64,000 nucleotides of DNA from Macrostomum lignano (taxonomy: Eukaryota). Position numbers and translations under genes: made by a program. The notes under the pieces were generated by a model. That model did no database searches and was not told where the DNA came from. It saw only the letters and a program-made list of their open reading frames with translations. The DNA lies in the NCBI GenBank assembly GCA_002269645.1, contig NIVC01003288.1, positions 42,325-106,324 of the forward strand. The letters run 5' to 3'. This document shows positions 4,357 to 63,916 of the stretch, in pieces (positions within the stretch are counted from its first letter, which is position 1; each line of letters begins with the position of its first letter).

Positions 4357-4358
<2 letters not shown>

Positions 4359-4408
<50 letters not shown>
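4359..4408. repeat. (GA)n microsatellite, ~25 units
   Basis: Direct reading of the sequence. Confidence 0.97.
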
Positions 4409-4411
<3 letters not shown>

Positions 4412-10720: not shown

Positions 10721-11190
<470 letters not shown>

Positions 11191-18685: not shown

Positions 18686-19074
<389 letters not shown>

Positions 19075-40400: not shown

Positions 40401-40788
40401 GATGGTGAAGAGTCTGCAGCTGCTCACCGACCGTTTAAAGCGCCAGTACGAGCAGCGCCAGCGCCGGAAGCGGGTCGATCAGCAGCGGCGCGGCTTCGGC
40501 GGCTGCAGCTGGGAAAACTCGATGCCGGCCGCCCGCATGAAGGCGGAGATTCGCCAGGCGCAGGCGCGGGCCACGTGTCTGCGCAACTGCCTGCGAGCCG
40601 CGCTCGGCAGCGGCGGCGCCTGCGGTCCTCGCGGCCCCGCTGGCTGCGCAAGTGGCGACGGACCGGCAACCGCCGCTGTCGGCTGCAGACATCGGGGAGT
40701 CGCTACAGAGCAGGCCAGAGATCCCATCACCGACATCAAGTGCAAATACGAGCGCTGCCTGCTGTACAGCCGCTACGATGTCAAGTAG
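37461..40788 (+). CDS. Uncharacterised 4-exon protein (~419 aa, low-complexity/coiled-coil); exons 37461-37541, 37731-38064, 38161-38593, 40377-40788
   Basis: All three GT-AG junctions are phase-compatible (0, 1, 2) and total 1260 nt with no internal stop. AAAC-ATG-G start. Basic tracts ERRRRRQR and TKKKHR; C-terminal DPITDIKCKYERCLLYSRYDVK. Confidence 0.7.
38760..40345. repeat. 16-bp satellite (GTGACATTAGGATGGA) with higher-order structure, filling intron 3 of the uncharacterised gene
   Basis: About 100 units. Variant ACATCAGG recurs at 39041, 39679, 40317 (638-bp period); variant GGCATT at 39104, 39423, 39742, 40061. Confidence 0.95.
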
Positions 40789-41068
40789 GAATGGGATGGG
40801 ATGGGATGGAATGGGATGGAATGGGATGGGATGGGATGGGATGGAATGGGATGGGATGGGATGGGATGGAATGGGATGGGATGGGATGGGATGGGATGGG
40901 ATGGGATGGGATGGGATGGAATGGGATGGGATGGGATGGGATGGGATGGGATGGGATGGGATGGGATGGGTTGGGATGGGATTGGATGGGATGGGATGGG
41001 ATGGGATGGGATGGGATGGGATGGGATGGGATGGGATGGGATGGGATGGGATGGGTTGGGATGGGATG
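40789..41068. repeat. (GATGG)n pentanucleotide microsatellite starting directly after the stop codon
   Basis: Direct reading. Confidence 0.95.
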
Positions 41069-44952: not shown

Positions 44953-47900
44953 ATGCGTCTCGCACTGCTACTCCTCAGTGCTCTTCTATTTGTGACTGTC
45001 TTCTGCGAGCTTGCCGATGCTCGTCAAGGCAAAAGGTGAGCTAAAAGCTAAGGTTGATTTTGTAGATATAACCTTTTCAAGGGATTTTAGCCTAGTGGTT
45101 TACAGCGTCGGACTCACGACTTATAGGTCGGGGGTTCGAGTCCTGAACTTTGTGTCCTTGAGCAAGAAACTTAACTCTGCATCGCTTCAGTTTACCCAGC
45201 TGTAAAATGGGTGCCAGCATTAGCTGGGGTAATTGAGGGTCTTTGGATTAAACAGCCATTACACAGCCTTCAGATGCGCCGCGCAATAGCTGAGGCTGTG
45301 CTGTCGGTTGCGAATCTGGCCCAATTTGGGCAGGTGTAATTAATCGTTATTATTATTACTACTATTAGTATTATTTTTATTTTATTATCGTAGAGAAAAC
45401 AGCTATCATTGCAAAAATTGTCGCCTCGGTCGTCGCGTATCAGGCAGTCACAATTTCTCGAGTTCACATTTATAAGGGGTCACCTTTTTATTTTTTTGTA
45501 AAAAGGTGAAATCGAGGAAAATCGGGAAATCGCTGCCTAAGTAGCCGTTAAAACCTCGGAGAGTGAACAAGCGAACCAAATGCGCATCGTCCCATCTTGC
45601 AGCAGAAGCATGCGCAGCTACTACAAGCGCATGCGCAGCAGCATGGTTAAGCTGAAAGGCCTGTCCTACAGTCGGACTCGCAGGGCCGCAGCCATGCGCG
45701 GCCGCAAAGCCCGGGTCAGATGGGCCCGCCGCTTGAAGGCCCGGCGAGTGCGACGAGCGGCGATTCGATATCGCGTCACTCGCGTCAGCCGGCGGATACG
45801 CAGGACCAGCTCGGTGGTGCGGCGGTCTCGAGTGACCAGCAGAGCGCGGGTCAGACGGGTCGCTAGGCGATCCAGCTACTCGCGCTGCAAGCTGGCTGCC
45901 ACTCGCTTCGTCTCCTGCACCAGGCGGCTGTACACTCGCTGCCCTGCTGGCTACAAGCGCAGAGGCAACATGTGCTTCCGGGTCTACTGTCCGAAGCCGT
46001 ACGTCCGTCGGGGAGCAAAGTGCGTCCGTTACAGACGCGTTGTTGCTCGCCGGATGGCCTGCCCTCGCGGCTTCACCCGCTACGGCAGCCGATGCGTCCA
46101 GCGGCTTGGACTGGCCTGCAGCGCCGGCTACCGTGTCTACAAGGGCCGCTGCCACCTGGTCCGCTGTCCTGCCGGGTTCACCAAAATTGGCAACAGCTGC
46201 CGCAAGAGCTGCCGGAAAGGCTTCACTCTGAAAGGCTTCACTTGCGTCCGAATCCGGACCAGATGCCCCAAGAACTACTACCGCGTTGGTGCTCGGTGTG
46301 TGCGCTATCGCAGCGGTCGGGCAAGGTAAGAATTTAACTGAATCCATCTGGTTGCCTCTAAAAGTAAAATATCAGTTGCTTTTAACTCTCAATACCATTG
46401 TTGCAACATTTCAGATGTCGATCTGGTTATAAGAGAAAAGGCAGCAAGTGTATTCGCATATTAAAATCTTGCCCGCGCAACTACAAGCGGCGGGGTAAGC
46501 GCTGTGTCCTTACCTGTCCTAGTGAACGGATTCCAAGGCGAACAAGAGACGGTCGCGTTCGTTGTGTCGTTGTGGTATCCAGGTGCCCTGTTGGCTACAA
46601 GATGAAACGGATCCGAACGCGTCGTGGCTATAGGTAAGTGACATTGTTGGGACTTTGTCGCCTCAGAAAATCTGGAACAGAAATACATCACATCTGTAAT
46701 TAATCTATCTACACCTAATCTAGAATCCAGTGCACAATGAACAGCGGCAGCTGCGCTAAAGGTTTCCGCAAGATCAGACGCTATAAACGCGGCTACTCCT
46801 GCGTGAGGATCGCTTGTCCAAAGAACTACGTGAAGCGCGGTAGCGCATGCGTTTATCGCTATAAAAAGCGTCGTCGATGCCCCAGCGGCTACACTCGGAT
46901 GGGATCCACGTGTCGGAGGATCCGCTGCCCCGGAGGCTATGTAAGGCGCGGCAGTCGATGCGTTTTCGTTCGGTGTCCAAGTGGCTACAGGCGAGCTGGT
47001 CGCATGTGCGTCAGGACAAGATTCGTTAAAACCTGCCCATCTGGCTGGGTGCGACACGGCAAGCTTTGCAGGCGGTTGATTTGCCCCTCTGGCTACAAAA
47101 AGGTCGGCCAGTACTGCATTAGTAAGTAGCAAACTCGACAAGACATATCTAAGCGTTACTTCTAAACCAAAACAAAGGAACTAAAGTGACTTATCTCTTA
47201 CTCCTCCAGACAACTCATGTCCCTCCGGTTTCGTGAGAAGGCGACGCATGTGCGTGCGAAGTAAGTTCCATTTAACAATTGTACAACTGCAAAACTTTAG
47301 GCAGCGGGAACTGCTGCAATAACAATTAGTCATTCAATTATTCACTTTCAGCTCACTGTACAGCTGGATACAAGAAGAAAGGAAAGCTATGCGTTCGTAA
47401 GTAAAAAAAGCTAAACTTCGAATCTCAGAACTATGAGATATAAATTATTCAATGCAATTTGCTTTCTACGAGTATATTCCAAAATTTTCAGGGAATTGTC
47501 CGAAAGGCACAAAAAAATCTGGACGATTCTGTGTCAGAATGAGATGCCCAAAACGTTTTCGACGAGTAGGAAAAAGTTGCGTCCGAAGTAAGCACTCATT
47601 AAATAAATGTTCGAAAGTGCTGTGAAATGCAGAGAGCATCTTAAGATACCAGCTTATGCAAAATCTGACCTTCCAGCAAAATGTCCCAGTGGTTACGCTA
47701 AGCGATATGTCCGACAGAAAGTCTACACAGGGCGCAAAGTCTCCGGATCAGTGAGAAAGTGCAGCTGCATCGGAGCCAAGACTGGCAAGAAACCGTCCAA
47801 AAAGAACGCCATCGACATGGCATTCGTGGTCGACGTGACCGGCAGCATGGGATCGGTGATCCGCGCGATCAAGGCCAAGATCCGCGAGGTTATCAATGCG

Positions 47901-50900
47901 AACGCTAAGTCGCGCATCGTAAGTGGTTTTCAATCTAAATTTCAGAGCCCTAAATAAAGAAGACCAATTTTCTAACATGACAAACGAAACGCTACCTGGC
48001 CATTTCAGGTAAACAAATTCGTGCTTGTGCCGTACGGCGATCCGAAAGTTGGTCCAGTGACGGCGACTCGTGCGAGATCTCGCAGCTCCGTGAACTCCCT
48101 CATCAGAGCAGTGAACGCAATGCGCGCATCTGGCGGAGGCGACTGCGCCGAGTTCGGCTTCTCGGGAATATACGAAGCGCTGACCAGAGTAAAGAAGAAC
48201 TCAATTGTGTACGTGTTCACCGATGCGAGTCCGTCAGCTCGAGACAGACGGTGAGCAGACATGGCATGTGTAGCATGCAGTCTTTTGCTGCAATACCAAG
48301 ATATCAGCGGAGAAATATTACGAATCTATGATATGGTCCTTATTAATTTTCAATCAGTACCTAAAGAATAGTCACTTCCGAATATAGTTGAGCACGAAAA
48401 AGCAATTAATAATCAGTTCATGAGTGGAAATACCTCAGATTTCATCTGACGGGGCCCATAGATTCCCACGCAGTAGAAATTAGCCAAGAGTGCGGCAATT
48501 CTTTAATGCTTCTAAGCAATTTAGTTGGCCTTTGAACAGTAAGGAACCGGCAACTCCTTCTCTTTTGTACTGCCGTGGTTGAAAGCATGTTCTTTAATTG
48601 ACGCCTCTGATGTCTGAGGGGCTTTCGTTTCCTGGAACCGGGGACCCTGAAGACCCTGAAGCCCAATCGAGAGGATCAACTGCAGATCAAGGACTAGGAG
48701 AAGGCAACACTTGCAAATCGAGGAAAAATAGTTGAAGGCCGAACATTAAAACTGTCTGTATCTCTGAATCGGTTGCATGTAGTAGTTACTTTTTTAGCCA
48801 GATTGTTCAGATTTTTGTCGCTTACCCAGTAAGACATTAACTTTAGTTTCCAATTAGATGTAGGTGCAAGAAACATCCTGTACAACGGAGACATCCTATA
48901 TTTTGGTGCGATTGGTATTTAAGTATAAGTTTAGGAAGCAAAATAAAGTAGCCAAAAATCTTAGGCGCAACATTGGTTAGTTCACTACTGGACATTACAG
49001 AATATACTTAGCCTTGGCATATACCCAATATGACAAAGCAATGTTGGGTTTCTCTCCTATAGTTCAAGAGTAGGCCTGGTTATAAAAATACTTATACTTT
49101 GCAGACGCAAATCGCAATCAGTAAAAAATCTACGAGTAAGTTGAGCAATAAAATAGGCCTAGGCCCATTACAATAATCTCCTATAGTCGATAAAAATAAT
49201 TACAAGTAATTTAAAAATTGTAAAGGTGTATTACGCTCGTAATGTATCTGCTGATAACGAGGGAGTGTCGCAATAAAAACTGAGCCGCGAGGGCGAGGAA
49301 CACAAAAACGCGTAAAAAAATTAATTTGCGGTAAAACCATCTTAATTAAACCTAAGATGCCTATCAGAAATTATATTTTATATGAGAATTCTTCTAGCTT
49401 AAAGCCCAACTCTCGCTTCTAAAAACAGTCCATTTATCTAGTTCGTATCTTGTGAAAGTGAGATCCAGTGAGCTCCAAGCACTGCAAGTTGCATCAACCT
49501 TTTTTAGCAACTTGAGCCAAAAAGTCGTTTCTAACCCACAGTCCGTCCCATTCGCTGAATGTAGAGATGTTCTTAATTTTGAAGCTCTTCATGGACAGCA
49601 GGGAGAAGTTTCTCGAGGTCATGAAGCGCGTCACAAACTCGTAATTTTTGGACAATTGCGGTCTGTTACTGAGTTTTTTCCGCCAGAACTCCATCTGCAG
49701 CGCCATGATGTTGAGCTCTCTAAACAGCTTCTCGCCATTCTTCATGAACAGGTGCTCGCCGGACTCGATGTCCATCTTGATGACCACATTCTTGGTGCCG
49801 ATGTGCGCTCGAAGCTCGTCCGCTTTGACAGTGGTCACAGGAACCGTGTCCTCGATTAACTTCGTGACCTGCCGTTTCCAGTCAGCCAATCCGCCTGAGC
49901 CGCTTCCAGCGTTGCAATCCATGCCGTCAGCGTCCCAACTGATCCGCTTGAGCGCCACATCGTCACTGATGAAGCCCCAGAAAAGCTTCAGCTTGTCGTC
50001 AAGCAAGTTCAGCCGCTTCGCTGACATTTGCAGCCTGACCAGTACGCGAATGTTAGCATCGATGGCCACCACGGGATACCCGAGCTCTCTGGCTTGCAGG
50101 CTGTAGATGCTAAGGTTGCTGCCGATATCGAGGAACGTCGCAGAGTTTGTCGGAAACTTCTTTAACAGGTCGAGCATCGTATGAATTGCGCTACTTTCCC
50201 ATTTATTGTATCTTAGAATTAGTCCGGAAATCATGTCCTCCTTGCCGAAGGTGACTATCGGCATTAAAGGGCCGCCCATCGCTCGGGTCACATTGGCCAG
50301 AGGAGACCCTTGTCTGACAATGGTGTACAACTGCTGCGGTAAGTTCCTGTTCAGCTCGCACAGGGGAAACTTGCCCCTGACTAACTGGTAGGCCGGCGTC
50401 TCCTGACATAGTCGGTGCTTCAGGCTGGGGTTCGTGAAGTCGACATTGCGGAGCTCGTTGAATGGAGGACAGTTCTTTTATCATTTTGACATCGCTCAGC
50501 GTTGGCAGCGACTCTTCGGCGGTCAGGCTTTTGCTTCCAATGAGATTTAGTTTTGAAGCGGTCAATATTTTGGACCGATAGGTATAGGACTCCGAAGCGG
50601 TGCATTTTTGTTTCCGGGAGACGAAATACGTGACAGTGATTAGCGTAATCGATGGGCATGCCACAAGAAATAAGTGTATATTTTTTGCATTCTGTCACTT
50701 CAACATTTTTTGCTTTAAATTTGTTTCAAATTTCTCTATCTGCTTACGGTGATGTAGAATTTTATACAGAATTGTATTATTCATTGTATACAATAGTGTT
50801 GTCTGTCTATCCGAATGTAAAAGCTTTGCTCCGTGCAGATTCTTTGAGCTACTGCGGAACAATGCAGCGCATAACTTACCAAAGTTGTTTCGAAGGTAGA

Positions 50901-53900
50901 AAATTGGTAGCGCTGGAAATGTGCACTGTGAAGAGGGACAGACCGATGGAGCCTCTGCTGTAAACGCGTCTGACTGTCCCACCCCACCCCCCTTTCGGTT
51001 CGATTTTGTGCGCCGCGGCATTATTAATTTGGGGTATGTGCTCAAAAATTTGGCAGGGGGGGGGGGGTTGTCGTGCCACTCACACCTACTGGGGGCCAAC
51101 CCTAAGGCACAGAGCTCGTCTGGGCTACTAGAAAGTTAGGGCACTTTGTGAGAGCGTGCCTGCATACAATAACCGCGCGCTTGAATCAGACTCAGCGCTA
51201 GGTTGCCCGAAACTCTCCTGCAACTATTACTTATTGTCATAGGAATAGGCCGGGTCCAAGCGCAGGGAAGCTCGCGCGTGACAGTGGGTAGATCATTCAG
51301 TATCGGGATAATTTAGAAAAAATCAGAAATGCATAGTTCGAACTTTGGCAGCTTCGAGAAAAGAACAAACATTTTCTGTTTCGCGAAACTAAACAGGTAT
51401 ACATTTAGATGTATTTAGACAAGGACTACAAGAACAGCGACAGAAAATTAAACAAAAAATTAAACGTGAAAACATACTCTCGACAACATGTTAAAATTTC
51501 CACCCCAAAACCAGTAATTAACAAGTGGCAGGTTTAATCCAACTCTAGCCGTAACTCTCTACTCTCTCATCACCAGCCTAAGCTAGGGCCTTATGACGCA
51601 GGCTGCCTTTTTACTCCCGAACAGAGATTAGTTACACAGAACATAGTAGCATACTGTGATAGAGGGCACATTTACAGTCTAAAAGAAGTTCGCATGTCTT
51701 TACGATGCTACACTTATCGCATTGAATAAGTAGTATGCACTGTATGTGCGACTGCGCGTGTATGATTCGATTAAATTTATAGTACTACTAGCCTCACAAT
51801 CAAATCTGGATAAGGCAAACTGGCCTCCAAATCAGGCGTTGAGCAAAAATAACGACTCCCGAACACAGGCGAAGGGGTTGGGGTAGCCAAAAGAGGGCGG
51901 AAGTGTGCGCAAACGCCGGATACGCAAACCACCCAGTAAAATTTCTTGTCTGCAGAAAGGAGAGCAATGTCCGATCGCTGGCTCGACGCAAGAACGCTCA
52001 GCTGAACTTCCTCATAACCGGAAATCTGTGCGGAAGACGCAACTCGTACCGCAGTTTGTCTCGATCGACTCGAGGCGCTTGGATCAAGATGAGCAGAACT
52101 CGGGCTAGCCGAGTGATGAGCTTCGTGAGTCGCGCTCTGAAACACGGCGCCACTGCGTTGAGAGGCTTGAACCGCGATGGTCTGTCGACGTTCGTATCGA
52201 GGCGCGAGAAGTGCAGGTGTCGTAGAGTTCCTCGAATCACGCCCAAGTACGCATATGTGAACGCGGTGAGATGCATCAGAAAATCGTCAAAGAAATGCCG
52301 CCGAGGCTATCGACTGCTGAAAGGACGGTGTGTTCGTCGTGCAGTGTCTCGAAGGTGTCCTAAAGGCTATCGTATGCAGACAACTCGACAGAAGAAGCGC
52401 GCTGGTAAGAGAGCAGTCGGCGGCTTCGTGAAGAAGTGCCGCTGTCTCCACGGCAAGCCGCCAGCCAAGGTCACGAAGCGAGCTCTTGACATGGCGTTTG
52501 TTGTCGACGTGACTGGCAGCATGAGCCGCGTCATCAGCGGAATCAAGGCCAAGATCAGAGAGGTTATCGATGCGAACTCACGCTTCGGAGTGGTAAGCAT
52601 GCAGCTTCGATTGCATTTCTTATTTTTATCGATAGTAAAGACAATTACTGATATTTGTGTCCATTGATATTTTAGGTGGACAAATTTGTGTTGGTCCCAT
52701 TCGCTGATCCAGTGGTCGGTCCTCGAGTCGTGAGTCGAGCAAACAATGCGAGATCGAGACGGCGACTACTGAGTGCAGTGAACCGATTGAGAGCATCTGG
52801 CGGTGGCGACTGTCCCGAGCTGAGTCGCTCAGGCATGTACCAGGCAGCGTCGGTGCTGAAGCCGGGCTCTATCATGTACGTGTTCACCGACGCCAGCTCA
52901 TCGAGAAAGGACAAGGTGTAAGTATTTCGCTAGAGTAGTAAGATGTAGTAAGATGTGCAGCTTGTTAGCTTGCTGTACAAAAAGACACCGAGGCATTGGG
53001 GCGTCAGTGGAATTGCAGCTATGGAGGGGAAAATTAGTTACATACATTCTGCTGACCCGTGGGCACTGACCCGTACACAAATACGTACACGGGCACGAAC
53101 TCACGTGATGTGTCCAGCGTTACTCGTCTACTTACTCGTTAGGAATGTACACGTTCGGTTGGTTGTGGATCGGCCCTCTTGAAAACCAGCTAAAACAAGC
53201 ATGTGTACTAATTTTGTAAAGGAGTTTTGAATTAATGTGAAATCACACTGAACTACAGTCGCGTTTACCACTGAACTACTCTGACCCCGCTTAGCTATTG
53301 CATGTAGGAGCGTAGTAATGTTAATTATCGTTTTAAATTCATTGTTTCTCCGTAAATTCATATTAAATGTAAGTTTTTCCTTTGGTTTGTTACTCAGGAG
53401 CCAAGCAGCTTTGCAGAAACTGATCAGCAGCAGAAAAATCCAGGTGAACTTCCTCATCTCTGGAAACCTCTGCGGACGTCGCAGTTCGTACAAAAACCTC
53501 GCAAAGAAAAGCAGCGGCTCGTGGACCGCAATGAACAAACGAATGTCCAACCGAGTTCTGTCGTTCATCAGCAGCGCTTTGGCTTTCGGAGCCAGACGCA
53601 TGCGACAGCTGAACCGCAGCGGTCTGGCCAGATTCGTGAGACACCGCAAACGCTGCCGCTGTACCCGAACTCGGCGCACGGTGAACACCTACAAGTACGT
53701 GACGGTGCGCAGGTGCGTGAGGCGCAGTGCTGCCCGGACTGGCGGCAGCAGTTCGAGCGGCAGTCGAGGACGTCGAAGGTGCCCGCCAGGATTCCGGACA
53801 GTTCGGTCTGGTCGGCGCCGTCGTGTCAGATGCGTGCGCAGGAGCTCCAGTGAGTATCTATAGACGATTGTACTGAGTTTACATGTACATGGTTTTGTAA

Positions 53901-56900
53901 ATTCTTGAGTTTAGAACCCAGACAAATTATCTGCGAAATCCTTTCTCAAGTAAGGCTCAAGCTTTTCTGTCTATGACTCCTATTAATCGAAACGCTGTAT
54001 AAATGCAGGCACCAAGTTTATTTTGTTGCAAAATTGTGGTAGTAAACTGATAAAAATTAATATTGATTTCGTTGAAATTTGGACTTAATTTTTAATAATT
54101 TTTATGATATTGAAAAGTTTTTCTGCTTCAAATACAGTATACGAAATTCAGAATTTATCCATGCACTGCCGGCACAAGACGTCTCATAGCCATCAAGGGC
54201 ACGTGGTAGCGTCTCAGGATGCCTCACAATGTACAAAACTTAAAATTTAAACCTATGTATTTTGTGAAACTTTTTAACATTGTCCTACTATATAGTAACA
54301 CATCTTAGTAACACATTCAACTAAGATTCCATTGCTTAAAACAAGAGAGAAATTCTATTGCATAAACAAGCCGCGCAGAAACCCACCCCAACGCGCAACA
54401 ACCACAACACGTTTCACCACCCCTAACGCCTAACCCTCACTAACCCCGGTTACAACTAGCGATGTTTGTTTTGATGTGCAAATGCCTAAAACCATAGACA
54501 TCTCGTCTCATTATCTACTCCTTTTGTTTTGTTAAGGACGCTCTATCCACTGACGTATTTTGTTGTTGTTGCTATCTGAGGAAGAGTGAATGAGTTACAG
54601 TTGGTAAAACCATCTGAAAAATCTAGTTCGAGCAATCCTCACAGGTGCAGCAAATAGTTGCACCCAATTTTCTACTTCAACTTATATTCTTTTTATAAAT
54701 TAACTTCAGGCTCAATCATTCCTTACTTGGCTACATTTGTCTTTAAATTGGATTGTAATTGAAACTGCTGGATTATAAAAACTGATTCATGAATCATGTA
54801 GCATAATTTTGTAACTATTGGAACTTTTACTATTTCAGAACGTTGTGGAAAATACTTCCGACGATACGGCAGAAAGTGCATCAGAGGTGAGAAATGATTG
54901 ACTGCTAGATGGCTCGAATTAAATTTATTTAAATATGTGCGTATGCACCGAGTAAAATTGAAACTGCTTACTGCAATCGGTTGCAGTTCGCTGCCCGCGC
55001 AGCATGAAGTCAAGGCGCATTCGCTCGAGAGTCCGAGTCGGCAAGCGTGTGGCTGGCTACACTAAGAAGTGCAGCTGCATCGGAGCCAAGACTGGCAAGA
55101 AACCGTCCAAAAAGAACGCCATCGACATGGCATTCGTGGTCGACGTGACCGGCAGCATGGGATCGGTGATCCGCGCGATCAAGGCCAAGATCCGCGAGGT
55201 CATCAATGCGAACGCTAAGTCGCGCATCGTAAGTGGTTTTCAATCTAAATTTCAGAGCCCTAAATAAAGAAGACCAATTTTCTAACGTGGCAAACGAAAC
55301 GCTACCTGGCCATTTCAGGTAAACAAATTCGTGCTTGTGCCGTACGGCGATCCGAAAGTTGGTCCAGTGACGGCGACTCGTGCGAGATCTCGCAGCTCCG
55401 TGAACTCCCTCATCAGAGCAGTGAACGCAATGCGCGCATCTGGCGGAGGTGACTGCGCCGAGTTCGGCTTCTCAGGAATATACGAAGCGCTGACCAGAGT
55501 AAAGAAGAACTCAATTGTGTACGTGTTCACCGATGCGAGTCCGTCAGCTCGAGACAGACGGTGAGCAGACATGGCATGTGTTGATTAAGTTAATTTTGCT
55601 TTTTTGCTACCAATACCAAGATATCAGCTGAAAAAATATTATAACTCAATTTTCATGACTGCAGAAAGGAGAGCAACGTCCGATCGCTGGCTCGAAGAAA
55701 GAACGCTCAGCTGAACTTCCTCATAACCGGAAATCTGTGCGGAAGACGCAACTCGTACCGCAGTTTGTCTCGATCGACTCGAGGCGCTTGGATCAAGATG
55801 AGCAGAACTCGGCTAGCCGAGTGATGAGCTTCGTGAGTCGCGCTCTGAAACACGGCGCCAGTACGCTGAGAGGCTTGAACCGTGACGGTCTGTCGACGTT
55901 CGTATCGAGACGCGAGAAGTGCAGGTGTCGCAGAGTTCCTCGATTTACAGCAAAGTACTCGTATGTAAATTCCGTAAAGTGCGTTAAGCGTTCTACATCC
56001 AAATGTCGTCGAGGATACAGACGCGTGAAGGGCAGGTGCGTGAGATACTCGAGAAGGTGCCGTCGAGGATACAGACGCGTGAAGGGCAAGTGCGTGAGGT
56101 ACTCGAGAAGGTGCCGTCGAGGATACAGACGCGTGAAGGGCAAGTGCGTGAGGTACTCGAGAAGGTGCCGTCGAGGATACAGACGCGTGAAGGGCAAGTG
56201 TGTGAGGTACTCGAGAAGTTGCCGTCGAGGATACAGACGCGTGAAGGGCAGGTGTGTGAGGTACTCGAGAAGTTGCCGTCGAGGATACAGACGCGTGAAG
56301 GGCAGGTGTGTAAGGTACTCGAGAAGATGCCGTCGAGGATACAGACGCGTGAAGGGCAGGTGTGTGAGGTACTCGAGAAGGTGCCGTCGAGGATACAGAC
56401 GCGTGAAGGGCAAGTGCGTGAGGTACTCGAGAAGGTGCCGTCGAGGATACAGACGCGTGAAGGGCAAGTGTGTGAGGTACTCGAGAAGGTGCCGTCGAGG
56501 ATATAGACGCGTGAAGGGCAGGTGCGTGAGGTACTCGAGAAGGTGCCGTCGAGGATACAGACGCGTGAAGGGCAAGTGCGTGAGGTACTCGAGAAGTTGC
56601 CGTCGAGGATACAGACGCGTGAAGGGCAAGTGTGTGAGGTACTCGAGAAGGTGCCGTCGAGGATATAGACGCGTGAAGGGCAGGTGCGTGAGGCGCGGGG
56701 CTGCCCGGACTGGCGGCAGCAGTTCGAGCGGCAGTCGAGGACGTCGAAGGTGCCCGCCAGGATTCCAGACAGTTCGGTCTGGTCGGCGCCGTCGTGTCAG
56801 ATGCGTGCGCAGGAGCTCCAGTGAGTATCTTTAGACATTTGTACCGTGTTTACATGTTCATCGTTTTGTATAGTATTGAGTTTTTAATGGAATCAAATAA

Positions 56901-59900
56901 TCTGCAAAAAGTGTTTCCTAGTAAGACTTCAACCTTTCCTGTGACTCTCATAAATAGAAACTCCGTATCAATGTGGACCTCACTTAATGCTCCGTAAAAT
57001 TGGATTCTATAGAAAGTACGATTGATTAATTCCGTGAAAAGTTCGACTACTTCGTGTACACAGATTTTTTGTAATTTCAATGACAGACAATTTTTTCTAG
57101 CTGGTAGTTTAGAAACAGTAAACGAAACTCATAATTTACTAATCTACGAGCGTACTGACGGCAACTTTATTAGTTACTTTATGGTTCGTTTGGTCGAACC
57201 ATAGGGTCTCTGAAAAACTCCGCCAATCAAAGCGACAGTCATCTCACAACAATTGAAGGCAGATGGTAGGGCTTCAGTATGCCTCACAATACACAAAACT
57301 TAAACTGTAAACTTTTGTACGCTCGTATTTCGTGAGAGTTGTTGAAATTGTCCTGCATTTTTGGTAAACGATGTCTCAAGGTGTAAAAATTTGGGTTGGG
57401 ACTTTCCTTGGCTCCACTACTCGAAAGTCGGCTTTGGGACTCTCTGTTGTGCGCTCGCAGTTGCTGATTTTTGTAAAGCCAGCTGTTTTGACTAGTGAAA
57501 TACTTAGTGAGCCTAAAATCAGTTCTCAATCTTGCAATGAATGATCTGCAAGTCTGTAATAGTGATTAACATAAATAGCTGATACAATTTATTGCCAAAC
57601 ATCTGAAAATGAGACGCAAGCCAGCACGAAGCCCATCGAAATATAATTTGTAAAGTTAATACGCTCGAAAGATGTGGCATAAAATAACACATTTAAATAA
57701 GATTCGCAAGCAAGTTGACACAGCTGAGAGGAAGAAAAAATCTATTGCGCCAACCACTCGCACAGGGCCAGGCCCGTACCTACACACAACCACACATGCA
57801 ACAAGTACCATAGCGCGCAACACCACCCCAAATATCTACTCATACAAACTCCGGTTAGCCACTAGCGATGCTCGTCAAGCCGGTAGATTACTGCGCCAAC
57901 GCCTAAAACCAGAGGCATCCCTGAGCATTATCTTCTTTTCCTTTGAGAAGGGGAAGAATAAAGGTGTTTGCTCGTAAGTCTGGATAACAGCCAATTTTTT
58001 ACTTCAAATTAAATTCTTTCAAGACATCAACTTCAGGGTCAATAATTAATTATTATGGCCATATTTGCCGTTTCATTGGATTGTAATCGTTGCTTTACGA
58101 GTGTATAACCACTGAATTATGGAGCACGTTTTTTAAAACTAGATTGTATTACAACTTTTACTATTTCAGAACGTTGTGGAAAATACTTCCGACGATATGG
58201 CAGAAAGTGCATCAGAGGTGAGAAATGATTGACTGCTAAATGGCTCGAATTAAATTTATTTAAATATGTGCGTACGCAACCGAGTAAAATTGAAACTGCT
58301 TCGTGCAATCGGTTGCAGTTCGCTGCCCGCGCAGCATGAAGTCAAGGCGCATTCGTTCGAGAGTCCGAGTCGGCAAGCGTGTGGCTGGCTACACTAAGAA
58401 GTGCAGCTGCATCGGAGCCAAGACCGGCAAGAAACCGTCCAAAAAGAACGCCATCGACATGGCATTCGTGGTCGACGTGACCGGCAGCATGGGATCGGTG
58501 ATCCGCGCGATCAAGGCCAAGATCCGCGAGGTTATCAATGCGAACGCTAAGTCGCGCATCGTAAGTGGTTTTCAATCTAAATTTCAGAGCCCTAAATAAA
58601 GAAGACCAATTTTCTAACATGGCAAACGAAACGCTACCTGGCCATTTCAGGTAAACAAATTCGTGCTTGTACCGTACGGCGATCCGAAAGTTGGTCCAGT
58701 GACGGCGACTCGTGCGCGATCTCGCAGCTCCGTGAACTCTCTCATCAGAGCAGTGAACGCAATGCGCGCATCTGGCGGAGGCGACTGTGCGGAGTTCGGC
58801 TTCTCAGGAATATACGAAGCGCTGACCAGAGTAAAGAAGAACTCAATTGTGTACGTGTTCACCGATGCGAGTCCGTCAGCTCGAGACAGACGGTGAGCAG
58901 ACATGGCATGTGTTGATTAAGTTAATTTTGCTTTTTTGCTACCAATACCAAGATATCAGCTGAAAAAATATTATAACTCAATTTTCATGACTGCAGAAAG
59001 GAGAGCAACGTCCGATCGCTGGCTCGAAGAAAGAACGCTCAGCTGAACTTCCTCATAACCGGAAATCTGTGCGGAAGACGCAAGTCGTACCGCAGTTTGT
59101 CTCGATCGACTCGAGGCGCTTGGATCAAGATGAGCAGAACTCGGGCTAGCCGAGTAATGAGCTTCGTGAGTCGCGCTCTGAAACACGGCGCCAGTACGCT
59201 GAGAGGCTTGAACCGTGACGGTCTGTCGACGTTCGTATCCAGACGCGAGAAGTGCAGATGTCGCAGAGTTCCTCGATTTACAGCAAAGTACTCGTATGTA
59301 AATTCCGTAAAGTGCGTTAAGCGTTCTACATCCAAATGTCGTCGAGGATACAGACGTGTGAAGGGCAGGTGTGTGAAGTACTCGAAAAGGTGCCGTCGAG
59401 GATATAAACGTATAGGCGGCAAATGCAAGAAAGCAGTTAGCGTTGGAGGTGGGTTTAATGGATGCTGTTTTGAGTCACTTGAGTCCCTTTTATAGCGCAA
59501 AGCAAGGTTTAAAAGCTACACCACCTTGATTATAGTATCCTGTGGAACTTTCCGGTGCACTCGAGGCATGAGTTGTCTGAAGAAATACCGATACGATGCC
59601 CGCGTTAGATCATCCGCACGAGCAGCTTACAGCGCTCGATTGGTTCGCGCCACCCGCTGGTTCAACGCTAGACGAGCAGCCGAAGCTCGACGTCACAAAC
59701 TATTTTTAAGAAACATGAAACCTCGCCTATCAGGTGAGCTAAACAGGATTTATGATTTTTGTAAAAATGCGATAAAAAGTCATCAGAAAAATTGCTTTCA
59801 GCCAAACGAGTGAGCCGCTTCTGCGAGCATAAAACTGGCACCGTCAGCTGCCCGCGAGGTACCACGATCGACATTGTTTCCGGATTCTACGGCCGCGTAT

Positions 59901-62900
59901 CCAATAAGTACTGCACTCGGGGACCCAGACGCACCACCTCTTGTTCAGCTCGCACAGCCAGTTCGCGTATAAGAAGCTCTTGTCAGAACAGGCAGTCGTG
60001 CCGACTTTCAGCTAGCAATAGCGTCTTTGGCGACCCTTGCGTTGGTACGCTGAAGTACGTGGAGATTCGCTACAGATGCAAGGCGACGCGAGCCACGACC
60101 GGTGCACGAAAGGCCGAGAAAGCAAGATACACCGCCGCTTTGAAGAAACTTTCAAGAAGTTACAACATGATGAAGGCGAAACTAAACGCCTCCTTAAAAC
60201 GCTTGCAATCCAGGGTCAGCCGGTGTGCATTTGTAGCCCCGAAAAAAAGTAAGTAACTTTTTATCCATCACTTCTTTCATTCTTCTTTCATCACATGTTC
60301 AGGAGAGTCTTTTCGTTTATTACGCAATTCAGCTGGCTGCAAGGCGGTCAGGTGCGGCAGAGGCAAGAAGTGCGTGATGAGAAGACGGCGCTTTGCTGGT
60401 CGAATGGCCTACAAACCGGCCTGCGTTAGAGTGCCGCCGAGTGGTGAGATTTGCACGTTTCTGTAAAATAAGCTGCCGTTGTTGAAGCCAAATAGAAAGT
60501 GCACACTTCAACCAAAATTGCAGCTCTGTGTGCCAGAATCAGATGCGGTCGCGGGCGTCGCTGCGTGATTCGGACGAAAAGGCGTCGAATTGGGCGTCGA
60601 GTGCGAGTTTTCAAGTCGGCTAAATGTCAGCCCAGGAAAAGTAAGCTTCGAGGCGAATTTGGACAACAAAATCTATTTTTTATAGAGTGAAACAATTACT
60701 TTTGAGCAAAAATTTCACGAATGACCGAGGTGCTAATCCCTGTATTGGTTACTGAGTCTTAGTCTACTCTAAACTTAGTCTACTCTACTTAGTCTACTCT
60801 AAATTGTCCTTTTCGGCAGGTCTCTACACGGTGGAATTAATGAAAGGACTCAACTTTAGGATTTAACATCCACAAATCAGATCTTTTCATGTATATATAT
60901 ATATACGCCCTCCAAATCAAGACTACTTGGCGCTTTGAATGCGATATAAATACTTCTAAAATATTTCTAAAACCTTCCTAATCACAACACGTTCAACAAT
61001 TTACCTTTCCAAAGCAGGAATAACAGTAATATTTAAATACTCTTTGAATTTCATCTTCTGAAATATTTCTTAAAAAGTTGAAATTGCTGAGACAGATATG
61101 TGCCTTTAAATCAAGGTCTGTTACGTTAAGTATCCATTATAAATAGGTTCTTGAAATCGCTTGAAATGTTAGTTAGTAAGCATCGTATTGTAAAACCGTT
61201 CTTTTTTATCCTACTGTGAGAATGAGTCGCCGTCATGGCGATATTTCGGATTTTCAAGTCAGATCGTCCAGAATTTTCAGTAAGAAATAGACTCACCGTA
61301 AAAACATTCGACACCCTTTCTTGTGACTTTTCCAACAGACCTGTGCAGCACCATGAAGTGCCGCTCGGGCTCGCGGTGCCGAGTTGTCTATCAAACAAAG
61401 ACTGTGCGTCGCCGGGTGCGCAGGCGTCAGAAGCGATGCTCCTGCAATCGGGCAGTCAAATCGAAGGCGGCGAAATCCGCAGCAAGAGGCTCCGCTGTTG
61501 ACATGGCGTTCGTGATTGATACAACCGGAAGCATGGGCCGAGTGATTCGCAGCATTCAGAGCAACATAATTAAGATTGTGAAGGCTAACAGAGGCACAGT
61601 CAGTCGGTTTGTTGTCGCTCCATTTAATGATCCTAAGGTAAGACGCTGGAGTTTTGAAAGTAATTCAGTGACAAAATATCTGAAAAGACTTAGCTCTCTC
61701 AAAATCTATTTAAAGTTTACTAAGTTTGAGCTTTGATGGCAAATTTAATGCCGGTTTTAAGGAGCCTCGAGTCCATTCCACTGACCCTTGACTACGCACA
61801 CGGATACGCAGCCAAGTACACTCTCACAGGGTGGCCAGTGGCCCTTACTTTCACATCGTCAGGTAGTGTAAAGAATCTGTGAATTGCAGAGCTTGGTCCT
61901 CATGGGGGAAAATTCCCAGACAAAGGGCCTGTCAACTTAAGCTCATAAAGTGGAGCCCGAGTAACCTATGTACACAAATTATGCGTCGTTCTGCTCTCAG
62001 TGACACTAGGAAGCATATTTGGCAAAAATGCGACAAAAATTGGACTTGGGATAGGGAAGAACAACCAAGGGGATGATTAGTGACTTATATTAACTTAAGC
62101 TTATAAAGTCCCTAATTATGTCCTTGCTTGTTCTCCCCGAACCCAAGTCAAATTTTTGTCGCATTTTTGCCAAACCCAGCTTCCTGGTGTCACTGTGAGC
62201 AGAACAACGCATCATTTTTGTGGTTACCCGGGCTCCACTTTATGAGCTTAAGTTGACAGGCTGTTTTTGTGCTCAAATCCTAAACTAATTTGGCTGCGCC
62301 TGGACGGCTTCTCTGCCCCTTCTAAGTCGCTAGGGAATGTGGTGAAAAATGATTGTTAAGTGATTCTCGGTTTTAGAGTTCTGCTTCTTTAAAATTGACG
62401 ACCTCCTTTCTTACGAGATATGTTTTCCAAGCAGCGCCACACAAGTTAAAGCCTGGATATAATGTTTTAAGCCCATCTTAGATGTGCTTTCATGATTCAC
62501 TATTTTTGCTTATCATTTAGGTCGGGCCGCTGACAGTCAGCACGAAGGCGGGATCAATAGTATCAGCAGTGAGACGCCTGAGGGCTCGAGGCGGCGGCGA
62601 CTGTCCAGAGTTAGCGATGCGCGGCATTCTGGCCGCAGCCAGAAAGGTTAAGCGCGGCTCCGTGATCTACGTGTTTACCGACGCCAGCGCTAAAGATTAC
62701 AGGTTGCAGAAAAAGGTAAAATGATTTTGCAATGGTGCATGTCTTTTGGAAAATTATATACGCAAATCTGAAAATATATAATTTTTGTTCAACTATTCAT
62801 GTAGGTACGCAGAGTCATCGACAACAAGAACCTGCAGATGGTGTTTATTGTCACGGGAAGACTTTGCGGAAGAAATTACCACAAAGAGTACCAGGCTCTT

Positions 62901-63916
62901 TCCAGAGGCAATGGCCGTGTCATCACTTTGAACAGCCGAAAAGTCAACAAGGTGCTGAGCTTCATCCGTCGAGCCGTCGCCCTGGGCAGCTCCCGTCTTA
63001 GACGCTTGAATCTGTCTGATCTTGGAAGCTACATCCGGAAGTGTAAGTGCAGAAGTGTGACACGTGTTATCACGAGGACTACAAGAAATACCGACGGGTG
63101 GCCAGGTGCACAAAGAGGGCTCCTGGTGACTGCAAATCTCGCAAGTGCAGCAAGGGCTTCAAGTGTGTTGCAATCAAGACTCGATCGATACCGAGCAGAA
63201 CAGTGACGCGCTGCGTCCGGTCCAGCAGTAAGTTTATTTCTGTCATTATGAAGGCAGATTTTTTGTTTAGTAAAGTAAATAGTGTATAAAAAGTAGCACA
63301 TTTGTTTTTTTTACATAATTACCCGATTAATTAATTTTGTAATAATTTTGAGAGATGAGCAATTTTAAGTAACTGTACTGAAGGACTATTCTACTTCTAT
63401 GCTGCCACTATGATATCTTATTGACTTCTTTCACGAGTAAAAGGTTACTTTAATCAATTAATAAATGAGCTACTTTTTAATTTACAGACCTTTGCAACAA
63501 CATCAAATGCCGCAAGGGCTACGCGTGCAAGGTGCGCAAGTTTGGTCGCATGTACACCAGACGAGGACGCCGATACAGACTTGTCCGATTCAAGGCCCGT
63601 TGCGTTCGTGTCAAAACTGGTGAAAATTCGGTTTTTGTCCTGTTAATTGAAGCGTTTATCCTTTTCCGGAACATTTATTAGAAACAAACGAATTCATTAA
63701 AAACCACCAGATCTGTGTTCCCGCGTACGCTGCGGAAGATTCAGGCGCTGCGTTGTTTCCAATCGGTACAGCCGGGCCTACATAATCAGCAGCACTAAGC
63801 GTTACAAGCGGCTGGTCGCTCGCAGAGCCGTCGAGTACGGAGACGCAAGGCCATCGCTGCTAGGCGATATGCCGCAAGACTGAAGGCACTCTCTAAGAGG
63901 CCCCGACGAAGATCAG
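44953..63916 (+). CDS. Giant secreted polycationic Arg/Cys-rich protein with 5 hemicentin-type vWA domains, SUEL lectin and FOLN-like modules (>=27 exons, ~2700 aa in window, continues past 64000)
   Basis: Exons 44953-45035 (signal peptide MRLALLLLSALLFVTVFCELADA), 45603-46325, 46415-46633, 46724-47121, 47210-47260, 47352-47396, 47492-47587, 47677-47918, 48009-48250, 51956-52592, 52676-52917, 53398-53849, 54987-55228, 55319-55560, 55665-56820, 58319-58560, 58651-58892, 58997-59448, 59536-59733, 59802-60248, 60333-60443, 60524-60640, 61339-61637, 62521-62715, 62805-63227, 63488-63619, 63711-63916. All junctions are GT-AG and phase-consistent once three 1-bp deletions (~55811, ~63080, ~63828) are corrected. 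Confidence 0.85.
45081..45240 (+). mobile_element. tRNA-derived CORE-SINE, copy 2, in intron 1 of the giant gene
   Basis: Box A-like TAGCCTAGTGG and box B GGTTCGAGTCC, then CORE TGTGTCCTTGAGCAAGAAACTTAACTCTGC..TCAGTTTACCCAGCTGTAAAATGGG (45151-45211) and the same tail as copy 1. Confidence 0.8.
45603..47587 (+). CDS. Giant gene: protamine-like Arg-rich segment followed by ~20 short C-x2-G-[YF]-x(4-5)-C-V repeats (exons 2-7)
   Basis: Examples: ARRLKARRVRRAAIRYRVTRVSRRIRR; CPAGYKRRGNMCF, CPRGFTRYGSRCV, CPKNYVKRGSACV, CPSGYRRAGRMCV. Confidence 0.85.
47814..52145 (+). CDS. Giant gene: hemicentin-type vWA domain 1 (split by the 90-bp and 3.7-kb introns)
   Basis: DMAFVVDVTGSM (MIDAS-type DxTGS), FVLVPYGDPKVGP, GGGDCAE, IVYVFTDAS, LNFLITGNLC. 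These match the motif order of the hemicentin N-terminal vWA (AFVFDVTGSM..LVPFHDPEIGP..GGGDCPE..IYVFTDA..VFVLTGDC). Confidence 0.9.
49494..50690 (-). CDS. FkbM-family (Methyltransf_21-like) SAM-dependent methyltransferase with N-terminal membrane anchor, nested antisense in a giant-gene intron; two 1-bp frameshifts
   Basis: Motifs FLDIGSNLSIYSL, YPVVAIDAN and VVIKMDIES. The MTase frame stays open upstream of the listed ORF to ~50475 (KNCPPFNELRNVDF..). The anchor HLFLVACPSITLITVTYFV lies in an adjacent frame. One A fewer in the run at 50476-50479 and one more in the run at 50681-50686 gives one intronless ORF from ATG 50690. Confidence 0.78.
52488..53585 (+). CDS. Giant gene: hemicentin-type vWA domain 2
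   Basis: DMAFVVDVTGSMS, FVLVPFADPVVGP, GGGDCPE, IMYVFTDAS, VNFLISGNLC across exons 51956-52592, 52676-52917, 53398-53849. Confidence 0.9.
55124..55850 (+). CDS. Giant gene: hemicentin-type vWA domain 3 (near-identical to vWA1; 1-bp deletion at ~55811)
   Basis: Exons and the 90-bp intron are nearly identical to 47760-48250; ACTCGGCTAGC here versus ACTCGGGCTAGC in the other two copies. Confidence 0.88.
56004..56693 (+). repeat. Coding 54-bp tandem repeat: 13 x CRRGYRRVKG[KR]CVRYSR[RS]
   Basis: Read from ORF 55737-56834; unit TGCCGTCGAGGATACAGACGCGTGAAGGGCAAGTGCGTGAGGTACTCGAGAAGG. Confidence 0.95.
58456..59190 (+). CDS. Giant gene: hemicentin-type vWA domain 4 (near-identical to vWA1/3)
   Basis: Same motifs and exon sizes (242/242 bp) as vWA3; intact frame. 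Confidence 0.9.
59822..60079 (+). CDS. Giant gene: SUEL / rhamnose-galactose-binding lectin domain
   Basis: CE....ISC..G..IDIVSGFYGR....C....C......SSC.NRQSC...ASNSVFGDPCVGTLKYVEIRYRC, with the diagnostic FGDPC.GT.KY and 8 Cys. Confidence 0.93.
60333..61460 (+). CDS. Giant gene: follistatin-N-like (FOLN-like) single-exon modules; more occur at 63488-63916
   Basis: CKAVRCGRGKKCV..KPACV, LCARIRCGRGRRCV..KCQP, LCSTMKCRSGSRCRV; later LCNNIKCRKGYACKV and LCSRVRCGRFRRCVV. Each sits in a phase-1 exon. Confidence 0.6.
61500..62990 (+). CDS. Giant gene: hemicentin-type vWA domain 5
   Basis: DMAFVIDTTGSM, FVVAPFNDPK|VGP, GGGDCPELAM, IYVFTDASAKDYRL, MVFIVTG, LNSRKVNKVLSFI; closest of the five to hemicentin (FTDARSKDYRL..LDKKQVNEVL). 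Confidence 0.92.
61927..62261. mobile_element. Foldback / palindromic MITE (~335 bp) in a giant-gene intron
   Basis: GCCTGTCAACTTAAGCTCATAAAGTGGAGCCCG..GTAACC is mirrored at the right end by GGTTAC..CGGGCTCCACTTTATGAGCTTAAGTTGACAGGC. The arms stay complementary for ~140 bp with mismatches; no clear TSD. Confidence 0.7.

Follow-up and report, generated by a model that had tools for sequence, protein, structure and literature searches.

One gene or several

The question raised by the plus strand of this 64,000-nt stretch of Macrostomum lignano DNA (the window) is whether its final part encodes one giant secreted protein or a series of smaller ones, and what such a product might do. We found that positions 44953–63916 make up most of one real giant gene, running from an ATG at 44953 to the donor site that closes the last exon at 63916; its 29 exons within the window join into one reading frame of 2,744 residues, and all 28 introns are of the GT..AG type, the majority being 68–104 nt long, with longer ones that include three of 3.7, 1.35 and 0.99 kb. 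An earlier note on this DNA had proposed one gene of at least 27 exons, with a single signal peptide and continuing past the window, and these points held: the sole leader-like segment is N-terminal (MRLALLLLSALLFVTVFCELADA followed by RQ), other hydrophobic stretches being absent, and the gene leaves the window at its end with a donor site, a sister copy on a Mlig_3_7 scaffold (L001) adding four further exons.

Exon 1 (44953–45035; this and all following exons are on the plus strand) carries the start codon and the signal peptide (MRLALLLLSALLFVTVFCELADA/RQGK), with an A-x-A cleavage motif judged by eye, and is the same in the public model P0001. Exon 2 (45603–46325), whose acceptor site is likewise that of P0001, encodes a Cys-free Arg tract of ~95 residues (K+R 41%, zero D or E) and then the first eight or so of the two-Cys CxxGY hairpins, which continue through exons 3–7 (46415–46633, 46724–47121, 47210–47260, 47352–47396 and 47492–47587); the small exons among these are symmetric, of phase 1, and the 45-nt exon at 47352–47396 is contained in P0001. 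Exons 8–10 (47677–47918, 48009–48250 and 51956–52592) encode vWA1 and, after a KCRC linker and hairpins, the N-terminal portion of vWA2. A 3,705-nt intron splits vWA1, which matches the VWA_4 profile (PF25106; E = 4.9e-37, profile positions 2–157 of 169) only after splicing across this intron, and the junction is identical in P0001. The same intron holds an opposite-strand ORF of 278 residues (49494–50330, minus strand), which lies outside the giant protein; it has a weak match to FkbM methyltransferases (E = 0.0017, under the Pfam cutoff) and 99.3% protein identity in L001.

Exons 11 and 12 (52676–52917 and 53398–53849) complete vWA2 and add a Gly/Ser patch and a single hairpin, and exon 13 (54839–54886) is a 48-nt micro-exon of phase 1-1 that encodes one hairpin (RCGKYFRRYGRKCIR) and is found in P0001 too. 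Exons 14–16 (54987–55228, 55319–55560 and 55665–56820) encode vWA3, 14 tandem 18-residue hairpins and a linker; a 54-nt tandem array lies at 56007–56693 (12.7 copies, 96% matches by TRF), which encodes CRRGYRRVKG[KR]CVRYSR[RS] and has ~20 units in L001. A second micro-exon hairpin, vWA4 and two hairpins follow in exons 17–20 (58170–58217, 58319–58560, 58651–58892 and 58997–59448), a block that duplicates 54661–56071 with 94.5% identity and is spanned by the second NCBI model on L001. Exon 21 (59536–59733), the junctions of which agree with the public model P0037, encodes the first Cx4Cx5C module (CGTFRCTRGMSC) and a basic segment, and exon 22 (59802–60248) the SUEL, or L-rhamnose-binding, lectin domain, recognized by Pfam and by motifs, and another basic segment. 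Exons 23–25 (60333–60443, 60524–60640 and 61339–61637) contribute three Cx4Cx5C modules and open vWA5 with its N-terminal portion (DTTGSM), exons 26 and 27 (62521–62715 and 62805–63227) the remainder of vWA5 and one module, and exons 28 and 29 (63488–63619 and 63711–63916) two modules and a basic segment, ahead of the donor site at 63917.

Our model aligned without gaps with both P0001 (1,543 of 1,560 columns identical) and P0037 (810 of 816). The public entries BOX15_Mlig001212g3 and a UniProt SUEL-lectin protein are fragments of this one gene, which NCBI and UniProt carry as unnamed fragments split within a single exon. The two NCBI models are 3′- and 5′-partial, respectively, and adjoin inside one exon exactly at a frameshift of L001, and our exon chain on L001 gives exactly both annotated product lengths, 1,596 and 1,542 residues.

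There being at least two models in the public annotation, together with an internal 1.4-kb duplication and introns of 3.7, 1.35 and 0.99 kb that could conceal promoters or terminators, might suggest several separate tandem genes encoding vWA paralogues, with no giant transcript. We give this arrangement a very small chance, however, as there is only one signal peptide and internal starts lack a leader, every vWA domain is split over three exons bridging the supposed units, P0037 takes as its start a Met that lies inside a vWA domain, both NCBI models are partial and meet at the frameshift, and for a paralogue there is a complete transcript of 11,590 nt with a 3,863-residue product. The single giant gene remains our reading. 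The public annotation cuts it at assembly errors in a tandem array, into unnamed fragments, and expression and RNAi screens based on such fragments may therefore have overlooked it.

Frame breaks and the sister copy

The earlier note had called the spliced gene phase-consistent, and here it needs correction, because the frame requires three single-base insertions relative to the sister copy. The first is at ~55811 (GGG to GG), as judged by alignment with internal copies 1 and 4 and with L001, and read literally leads to a TAG stop at 55819–55821, inside vWA3; the second is at 63079 (CC to C), where P0037 and L001 stay in one frame through ...RVITRTYKKYRRVARC..., and the third at 63838 (CC to C), where both give ...RAVEYRRRKAIAARRY.... 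The copy on L001 is 96–98% identical, is intact at all three sites and has 33 exons encoding ~3,328 residues. Between the two copies, substitutions amount to 0.98% in exons and 2.73% in introns, and indel columns to 0.3 per kb in exons and 37 per kb in introns, with a dN/dS ratio of 0.16 overall.

Three exonic single-base deletions and a literal stop codon are what a recently disabled pseudogene, truncated in vWA3, would show, in which case the full protein would come from the sister locus only. We consider this rather improbable: each of the three sites lies in a short homopolymer run, 7 kb of exon are free of further indels, and dN/dS is as low downstream of the first break (0.14) as upstream of it (0.18). 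L001, moreover, has a single-base gap of its own elsewhere, within the tandem array, a sign of assembly error. The three gaps in the window copy are most likely sequencing errors.

Composition and domains of the predicted protein

The full product of ~3,328 residues has a calculated pI of 11.9, with 22.8% R and 9.4% K (R+K 32%), 2.4% D+E and 5.7% Cys, corresponding to roughly 380 kDa, a net charge near +980 and ~190 cysteines. Its signal peptide is followed by the Cys-free Arg tract, CxxGY hairpins, vWA1–4 interleaved with hairpins, one SUEL lectin among Cx4Cx5C modules, vWA5, more modules, long predicted polycationic helices and an Arg-rich tail. Much of the earlier description survives this analysis, including the scarcity of acidic residues (2.5%, against 30% for K+R), the domain order, to which we add a Cys module that precedes the lectin, and the giant secreted polycationic character of the protein. 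A protamine or other sperm nuclear basic protein is ruled out by the signal peptide, the extracellular disulfide-rich domains and the length of ~3,300 residues. A mucin-like reading is also unlikely, because there are only four N-glycosylation sequons in the 3,328 residues and visual inspection of the sequence revealed no Pro/Thr/Ser-rich mucin-type tract. In single-sequence AF2 models, which are of low to moderate confidence, the basic linkers appear as long helices with pLDDT values of up to ~90; Foldseek comparison of the C-terminal model with the PDB returned generic helical matches only, all at E > 1.

All five vWA domains are of the hemicentin/VWA7 type and match the VWA_4 profile, with three stretches in P0001 (Pfam, E = 1.6e-109) and vWA5 in P0037 (E = 3.2e-38). 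The DxTGSM start of the MIDAS is present in five of five (DVTGSM in four, DTTGSM in one), as is GGGDC, and FTDAS, with the downstream Asp of TDA, occurs in every copy, making the domains putative metal binders.

The SUEL domain covers profile positions 2–80 of 80 in SUEL_Lectin (PF02140; E = 8.5e-21, 74.6 bits against a cutoff of 31.4). It has eight cysteines and the YGR, DPC and GT.KY motifs (...GFYGR...FGDPCVGTLKYVEIRYRC...); eight cysteines with YGR, DPC and KY(L) are the motif list of rhamnose-binding lectin domains.

The dozens of two-Cys CxxGY β-hairpins resemble the C-terminal half of an EGF domain, and those of exon 4 form a string of β-hairpins in a single-sequence AF2 model (pLDDT 65). 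Profile scores for the hairpins stayed under the cutoffs of the EGF families (cEGF 15.5 bits against 26.6; EGF_MSP1_1 20–26 bits against 27), the EB profile reached 27.5 bits over the whole sequence with no individual stretch passing, and a phmmer comparison of this region with PDB sequences produced chance antibody matches only. The Cx4Cx5C modules, of which there are ~10, each small and with two predicted disulfides, show this spacing in 10 of 10; C3 and C4 are separated by 13–24 residues, or by 59–127 where helical inserts occur. The label ‘FOLN-like’ originally given to them has no Pfam support, as the three module-containing segments gave no FOLN match at E ≤ 10.

Relatives and footprint data

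The earlier note had recognized this architecture from no named protein, and protein and literature searches yielded no named or characterized match to it, although the gene itself was already in NCBI and UniProt as fragments. The best match from outside Macrostomum, P0004, a Lys-rich CPKGYKK-repeat protein of 1,846 residues, is encoded without introns on a gene-dense metagenome contig and provided no functional lead. Searches of the literature for the locus tag, and for vWA, hemicentin, SUEL or rhabdites in Macrostomum, turned up no account of the gene, and its expression or localization was not reported in the literature and supplementary screen tables searched. The candidate sequences and homology table of the 2015 positional RNA-seq study contained no match to it, and the 2024 toolkit paper had no bearing on it.

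Mass spectrometry of M. lignano footprint samples by Wunderer et al. (2019; PMC6410801, supplementary Dataset S2) detected a full-length 3,863-residue paralogue of pI 12.13, annotated as ‘galactose-binding lectin / hemicentin-like’ and left undiscussed in that paper, and also a 1,639-residue SUEL-lectin protein of pI 12.48. The larger protein belongs to the same family as BOX15_Mlig000911g8 (P0039) and resembles the giant protein in the vWA motifs of its peptides, in its Gal/SUEL lectin annotation and in its extreme pI and size class; P0039 has the same order of hairpins then vWA as our gene, at 41% identity over 26% of the query. The 3,863-residue protein derives from another locus and has a different sequence: its peptides include NSIVYVFTDASPSR, NIVNVINVNAK and VGPVTISR, those of the giant gene NSIVYVFTDASPSAR and VGPVTATR. 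Tryptic peptides of the giant gene were not found among the entries listed for the footprint proteome. The footprint sample also includes actin, tubulin and ribosomal proteins, so that presence there is not specific.

Proposed role

From the composition and domains we infer, with the earlier note, a matrix protein of a glue, mucus, rhabdite or ejaculate that may condense with polyanions and be locked by disulfides, and we somewhat favour a role as polycationic cross-linker; most likely the protein builds a sticky or structural secretion. Such a protein might be packed in secretory granules, neutralized by a polyanion, and on release become a multivalent cationic cross-linker. Its Arg/Lys-rich hairpin rods and helices would bind polyanionic glycans or surfaces, the MIDAS sites of the vWA domains could form metal-dependent protein–protein links in seawater, the lectin would grip galactose- or rhamnose-terminated glycans, and disulfides would stiffen the network and possibly polymerize it. 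Candidate sources of the secretion are the epidermal or rhabdite glands, the adhesive or cement glands and the reproductive glands; rhabdites may consist of basic protein.

SUEL lectins are classic egg lectins, and the Cx4Cx5C spacing is common to the CREMP modules of avian eggshell membranes, so that a reproductive secretion (egg cement, the matrix of an eggshell or of the antrum, or a component of seminal fluid or of a plug), rather than a product of the body surface or adhesive organ, has to be weighed. We think this unlikely, although less so than the readings rejected above. The similarity to CREMP is not statistically significant (phmmer of the modules against PDB 9pgb, E = 1.6), and in the supplementary files searched from the prostate in situ screen, the table of top BLAST hits among them, the words hemicentin, von Willebrand, lectin, rhamnose, zonadhesin and VWA do not occur. 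In the 2015 positional study such words are confined to candidates with collagen VII-like, galectin-3-binding-like or zonadhesin hits, which seem unrelated, and the paralogues were detected in footprints sampled from worms that glide and attach.

A mainly defensive function, in which a surface polycation and lectin agglutinates or kills microbes instead of acting as a structural glue, would fit the extreme positive charge and the rhamnose-binding lectin domain, and lectins of the rhamnose-binding class have a part in innate immunity in the eggs and mucus of fish. A size of ~380 kDa, five assembly-type vWA domains and ~190 cysteines in repeats, however, are typical of matrix proteins and not of antimicrobial effectors, and we regard defence as highly improbable.

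Current accounts of temporary bioadhesion in M. lignano rely on two proteins and give charge a central place: in that model a secreted polyanion switches off the cationic Mlig-ap1. The giant protein belongs to a separate family of even larger, more Arg-rich secreted lectin/vWA proteins, one member of which is in the footprint data. Such a family could supply a part so far missing from flatworm glue, mucus, rhabdites or egg cement, and might offer ideas for coacervate-type biomimetic adhesives. More speculatively, the gene and its paralogues of 3,863 (pI 12.1) and 1,639 (pI 12.5) residues might make up a third, hitherto undescribed class of proteins in flatworm surface secretions: Arg-rich vWA/SUEL polycations, built from split EGF halves and CREMP-like modules, that would link galactose-bearing glycoproteins (such as PNA-positive Mlig-ap2 or mucus glycans) into a cohesive network that polyanions could loosen. 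We advance this proposal as a tentative one, with the odds against it.

Comparison with known systems

The database neighbours of the vWA domains are hemicentin-1 and VWA7-like proteins, and the domains have the VWA_4 profile and the GGGDCPE-like and DxTGSM motifs. Membership in the hemicentin family is nevertheless rejected, as Pfam shows nothing but VWA families and SUEL in P0001 and P0037; hemicentin has one vWA domain, whereas there are five here, set in polycationic Cys repeats, and the Ig, G2F, Ca-EGF and fibulin modules are missing.

Mlig-ap1, from the same species, is also a very large, secreted and extremely Lys/Arg-rich protein with a Cys-rich part and a lectin domain. It is a polycationic, cohesive component of the glue, neutralized by polyanions such as heparin, and the cohesive role proposed for it centres on its cationic regions (PMC6410801). 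The earlier view that our gene is distinct from Mlig-ap1 nonetheless proved right, and extends to Mlig-ap2: the published architecture and antibody peptides are absent, SRKPRRKNRKSRKP, KNNKRRVRKARKNN, KSRKVN, TSRKSTGRTTRQKK and VNRETPKEPKKALS are all missing, and the domain sets differ. Mlig-ap1 has KR regions A–C, a C-type lectin, vWD/C8/TIL and 17 Ca-binding EGF modules, whereas the giant protein has five vWA domains, a SUEL lectin, CxxGY hairpins and Cx4Cx5C modules, and favours Arg over Lys.

CREMP modules, often annotated as FOLN-like, occur in insoluble structural proteins, and the paper describing them also draws comparisons with octopus egg tethers and midge silk (PMC12723725). In common with the CREMP of the avian eggshell membrane (PDB 9pgb), the giant protein has the Cx4Cx5C spacing and a Gly before C3, and three of its consecutive modules align cysteine for cysteine, at the non-significant score given above, although C3 and C4 are eight residues apart in CREMP and 13–127 apart here. 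Finally, the sea star footprint protein Sfp1, a temporary-adhesive protein summarized in PMC6410801, is, like our protein, large, secreted and Cys-rich, and carries galactose-binding (SUEL-type) lectin domains; Sfp1 has vWD, C8 and EGF domains, and the giant protein has vWA (type A) domains in place of vWD/C8.

Gene structure and the sister copy

Stop-to-stop translation of the forward strand gave a run of open segments rich in Lys/Arg and Cys, extending from 44.9 kb to the end of the window. Splice junctions were chosen by listing frame-keeping GT/AG pairs, nearly every pair giving a single obvious junction, and the final model comprises 29 exons (44953–63916), in agreement with the earlier note's claim of one gene of at least 27 exons; each of the 28 introns begins with GT and ends with AG, the donors resemble GTRAGY, and 20 introns measure 68–104 nt. 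In protein database searches, residues 1–1,193 of the spliced model matched P0001 (‘hypothetical protein BOX15_Mlig001212g3, partial’, 1,596 aa) over their full length with 98% identity, as well as two UniProt ‘VWFA domain-containing’ fragments, and the C-terminal 756 residues were 99% identical to P0037 (UniProt ‘SUEL-type lectin domain-containing protein’, 1,223 aa). Alignments of the model with P0001 (1,560 columns) and P0037 (816 columns) contain no gaps, and P0001 shares both the 45-nt hairpin exon (47352–47396) and the junction across the 3,705-nt intron between exons 9 and 10. A full Pfam VWA_4 match for vWA1 (4.9e-37) requires the splicing of exon 9, which ends at 48250, to exon 10, which starts at 51956. 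The public record of this gene consists of unnamed fragments only, and its family, although detected, is unstudied.

P0001 maps to Mlig_3_7 scaffold NIVC01000061.1 (locus L001). Since this scaffold is collinear with the window at 96–98% nucleotide identity, it represents a sister copy (a recent paralogue or an allele) rather than the window sequence itself. The 3.7-kb intron (48251–51955) holds a 278-aa ORF on the reverse strand (49494–50330; 327 aa from stop to stop), which may be a nested gene; its match to an FkbM-type methyltransferase is weak (E=0.0017) and falls short of the Pfam cutoff, and its protein is 99.3% identical in L001, where it is not annotated, the surrounding intron being about 96.7% identical. 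Upstream of the gene lie long short-period tandem arrays (38766–40351, also 33990–35420 and 40650–41140), with BLAST matches shifted in steps of about 16 nt and strong GC-skew swings at 34–36 kb and 38–42 kb; in L001, the corresponding region carries an annotated gene of 458 aa.

The NCBI annotation divides L001 into two genes, 10001–21590 (1,596 aa) and 22136–31092 (1,542 aa). The exon chain carried over to L001 yields both lengths exactly (36 + 1,560 residues; 4,626 nt, or 1,542 residues, with no stop), and both gene boundaries fall inside exon 16 (L001 20873–22406), within a 54-nt tandem array in which L001 has a single-base gap of its own, exactly at the split into two partial models. P0037 begins at an internal Met within a vWA domain, and the protein has, as previously claimed, a lone signal peptide, with no other hydrophobic segment. 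Moreover, the supplementary footprint table of PMC6410801 includes a paralogue with a complete 11,590-nt transcript (5′UTR-CDS-3′UTR) encoding 3,863 aa, which makes one giant transcript the usual arrangement in the family. Against this evidence, it is very improbable that the region holds several separate genes rather than one.

Frame breaks and selection

The frame is not phase-consistent throughout, as the earlier note had supposed. Relative to L001, the window is one base short at 55811 (GGG to GG), 63079 (CC to C) and 63838 (CC to C), the first of these gaps being evident also against internal copies of the window, and the ORF as written ends at a stop at 55819–55821. Such breaks might mark the window copy as a very recent pseudogene, but all three lie within short homopolymer runs, the gap in L001 is at a different site, the 7,074 aligned exon bases hold no further indel, against 37 gap columns per kb in introns, and dN/dS is as low downstream of the first break (0.14) as upstream (0.18). 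From these comparisons, assembly error appears the likelier cause and a pseudogene the less likely. Substitutions between the two copies amount to 0.98% in exons and 2.73% in introns; over 2,511 codons, dS is 0.026, dN 0.0042 and dN/dS 0.16. The gene is protein-coding and under purifying selection.

Anatomy of the protein

The full L001 protein (33 exons) has 3,328 aa, with a mature chain of ~384 kDa and a pI of 11.9. It contains 22.8% Arg, 9.4% Lys, 1.5% Asp, 0.9% Glu and 5.7% Cys (189 residues), with Lys + Arg exceeding Asp + Glu by 984. Acidic residues are thus as scarce as had been noted, and are almost confined to the vWA and SUEL domains, where they make up about 5%, against 0–2% in the rest of the chain. 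After the N-terminal signal peptide come a Cys-free tract of ~95 aa (41% Lys + Arg), two-Cys CxxGY units (31 strict matches in the window model, 37 in L001) and vWA1–vWA4, with a KCRC linker and further hairpins after each. The 54-nt array, whose copy number differs between the window (12.7, within 55665–56820) and L001 (about 20 units, within 20873–22406), precedes a single Cx4Cx5C module, one SUEL lectin, three further Cx4Cx5C modules, vWA5, additional modules spaced by long basic segments, and an Arg-rich tail that runs past the window end. Every vWA has DxTGSM, GGGDC and FTDA motifs, and the SUEL domain has eight Cys with YGR, DPC and GT.KY motifs. A mucin-like protein is unlikely, since the 3,328-aa sequence has only four N-x-S/T sequons and no Pro/Thr/Ser tract was seen in it by eye.

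Within the gene, 54661–56071 and 57988–59404 form a 1.4-kb duplication (94.5% identity) that takes in the micro-exon, vWA exons A and B, and the first part of exon C. With 98–99% identity to each of the two copies, the exons of vWA1 (47757–48271) suggest that vWA units were recently duplicated or underwent gene conversion.

The small modules had been called FOLN-like, a label that does not hold, as they gave no Pfam FOLN match at E≤10. The only match in a PDB sequence search was the four-module cysteine-rich eggshell membrane protein (CREMP) 9pgb, in which three consecutive modules align Cys for Cys at a non-significant E=1.6. CREMP modules, frequently annotated as FOLN-like, have Cx4Cx5Cx8C spacing with 1–3 and 2–4 disulfides, resemble EGF minus its last disulfide, and have been compared with octopus egg tethers, midge silk and other disulfide-rich structural proteins (PMC12723725). 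The present protein keeps Cx4Cx5C for the first three Cys, whereas its C3–C4 loop has 13–24 residues, or 59–127 with a basic helical segment inserted. The CxxGY units resemble by motif the C-terminal EGF hairpin (C-P-x-G-Y-x-x-x-G-x-x-C), the half remaining beside the CREMP-like part; with Pfam cEGF, EB and MSP1-EGF at or below threshold, this is resemblance rather than membership. In single-sequence AF2 predictions, exon 4 folds into strings of two-stranded hairpins (pLDDT 65) and the basic linkers into long helices (pLDDT as high as about 90), with poorly defined hairpin modules between them, and a Foldseek search with the predicted structure returned nothing informative.

Paralogues in the footprint proteome

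Dataset S2 of PMC6410801, a mass spectrometric analysis of adhesive footprints, includes the 3,863-aa protein (457 kDa, pI 12.13), annotated ‘Galactose binding lectin / hemicentin 1’; its peptides NSIVYVFTDASPSR, NIVNVINVNAK, VGPVTISR and FILVPFADPK match P0039 (BOX15_Mlig000911g8), a diverged paralogue. The dataset also has a 1,639-aa protein (pI 12.48) annotated with a galactose-binding (SUEL-type) lectin domain (Pfam score 143.8), its peptides suggesting two such domains, and the pull-down and tail sets contain a 609-aa vWA protein (pI 11.3; PMC6410801). The main-text passages of that paper that were examined take up vWA and lectin domains for Mlig-ap1, Mlig-ap2 and Sfp1 alone, and the proteins just listed thus appear undiscussed there. 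Actin, tubulin and ribosomal proteins occur in the same footprint sample, so presence is no proof of secretion. None of 12 tryptic peptides of the present gene was found in the portion of the PMC6410801 proteome tables that was covered. At its locus (L002; Mlig_3_7 NIVC01003734.1, 66174–79670), P0039 runs off the scaffold end. In front of it, the annotation places a distinct 537-aa gene, which may be the N-terminal part of P0039; L002 may thus be another family member with fragmented annotation.

Proposed mechanism and comparison with known proteins

Both the exon structure and the domains are established, and the signal peptide and domain types predict that the protein is secreted. It would act as a disulfide-stapled, multivalent polycation, stored together with a polyanion, and after release might cross-link anionic glycans, surfaces or partner proteins through rods and helices rich in Arg and Lys, through MIDAS sites and through its single galactose/rhamnose lectin; any partner, tissue or phenotype assigned to it is putative. 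Except for the three breaks in frame and the term FOLN-like, what the earlier note described is real and well described, and its interpretation as a cationic matrix protein is a reasonable candidate reading.

Mlig-ap1 and Mlig-ap2 consist of KR regions and C-type lectin, vWD/C8/TIL, EGF, TSP-1 and LDL modules (PMC6410801). Identity with either is ruled out by the different domain set and the absence of their repeated peptides, upholding the claim that the protein is distinct from Mlig-ap1. No clear orthologue outside Macrostomum was seen in protein database searches, the next best matches being 26–29% identical Cys-repeat proteins or isolated vWA or SUEL domains. The best non-Macrostomum match to the hairpin region is an intronless, Lys-rich ORF of 1,846 aa with CPKGYKK repeats (891–6431) on a 7,875-nt ENA metagenome contig (ERZ24794637 NODE_34325), whose genes are on the same strand and tightly abutting, so that it looks viral or prokaryotic rather than animal. 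Its vWA domains are of the hemicentin and VWA7 type, but Pfam found no other hemicentin feature. A SUEL-type lectin is common to the protein and sea-star Sfp1, and with Mlig-ap1 it would share the logic of a huge secreted polycation. We class it, as a variant, with large secreted proteins of matrix or adhesive type that are polycationic and rich in Cys.
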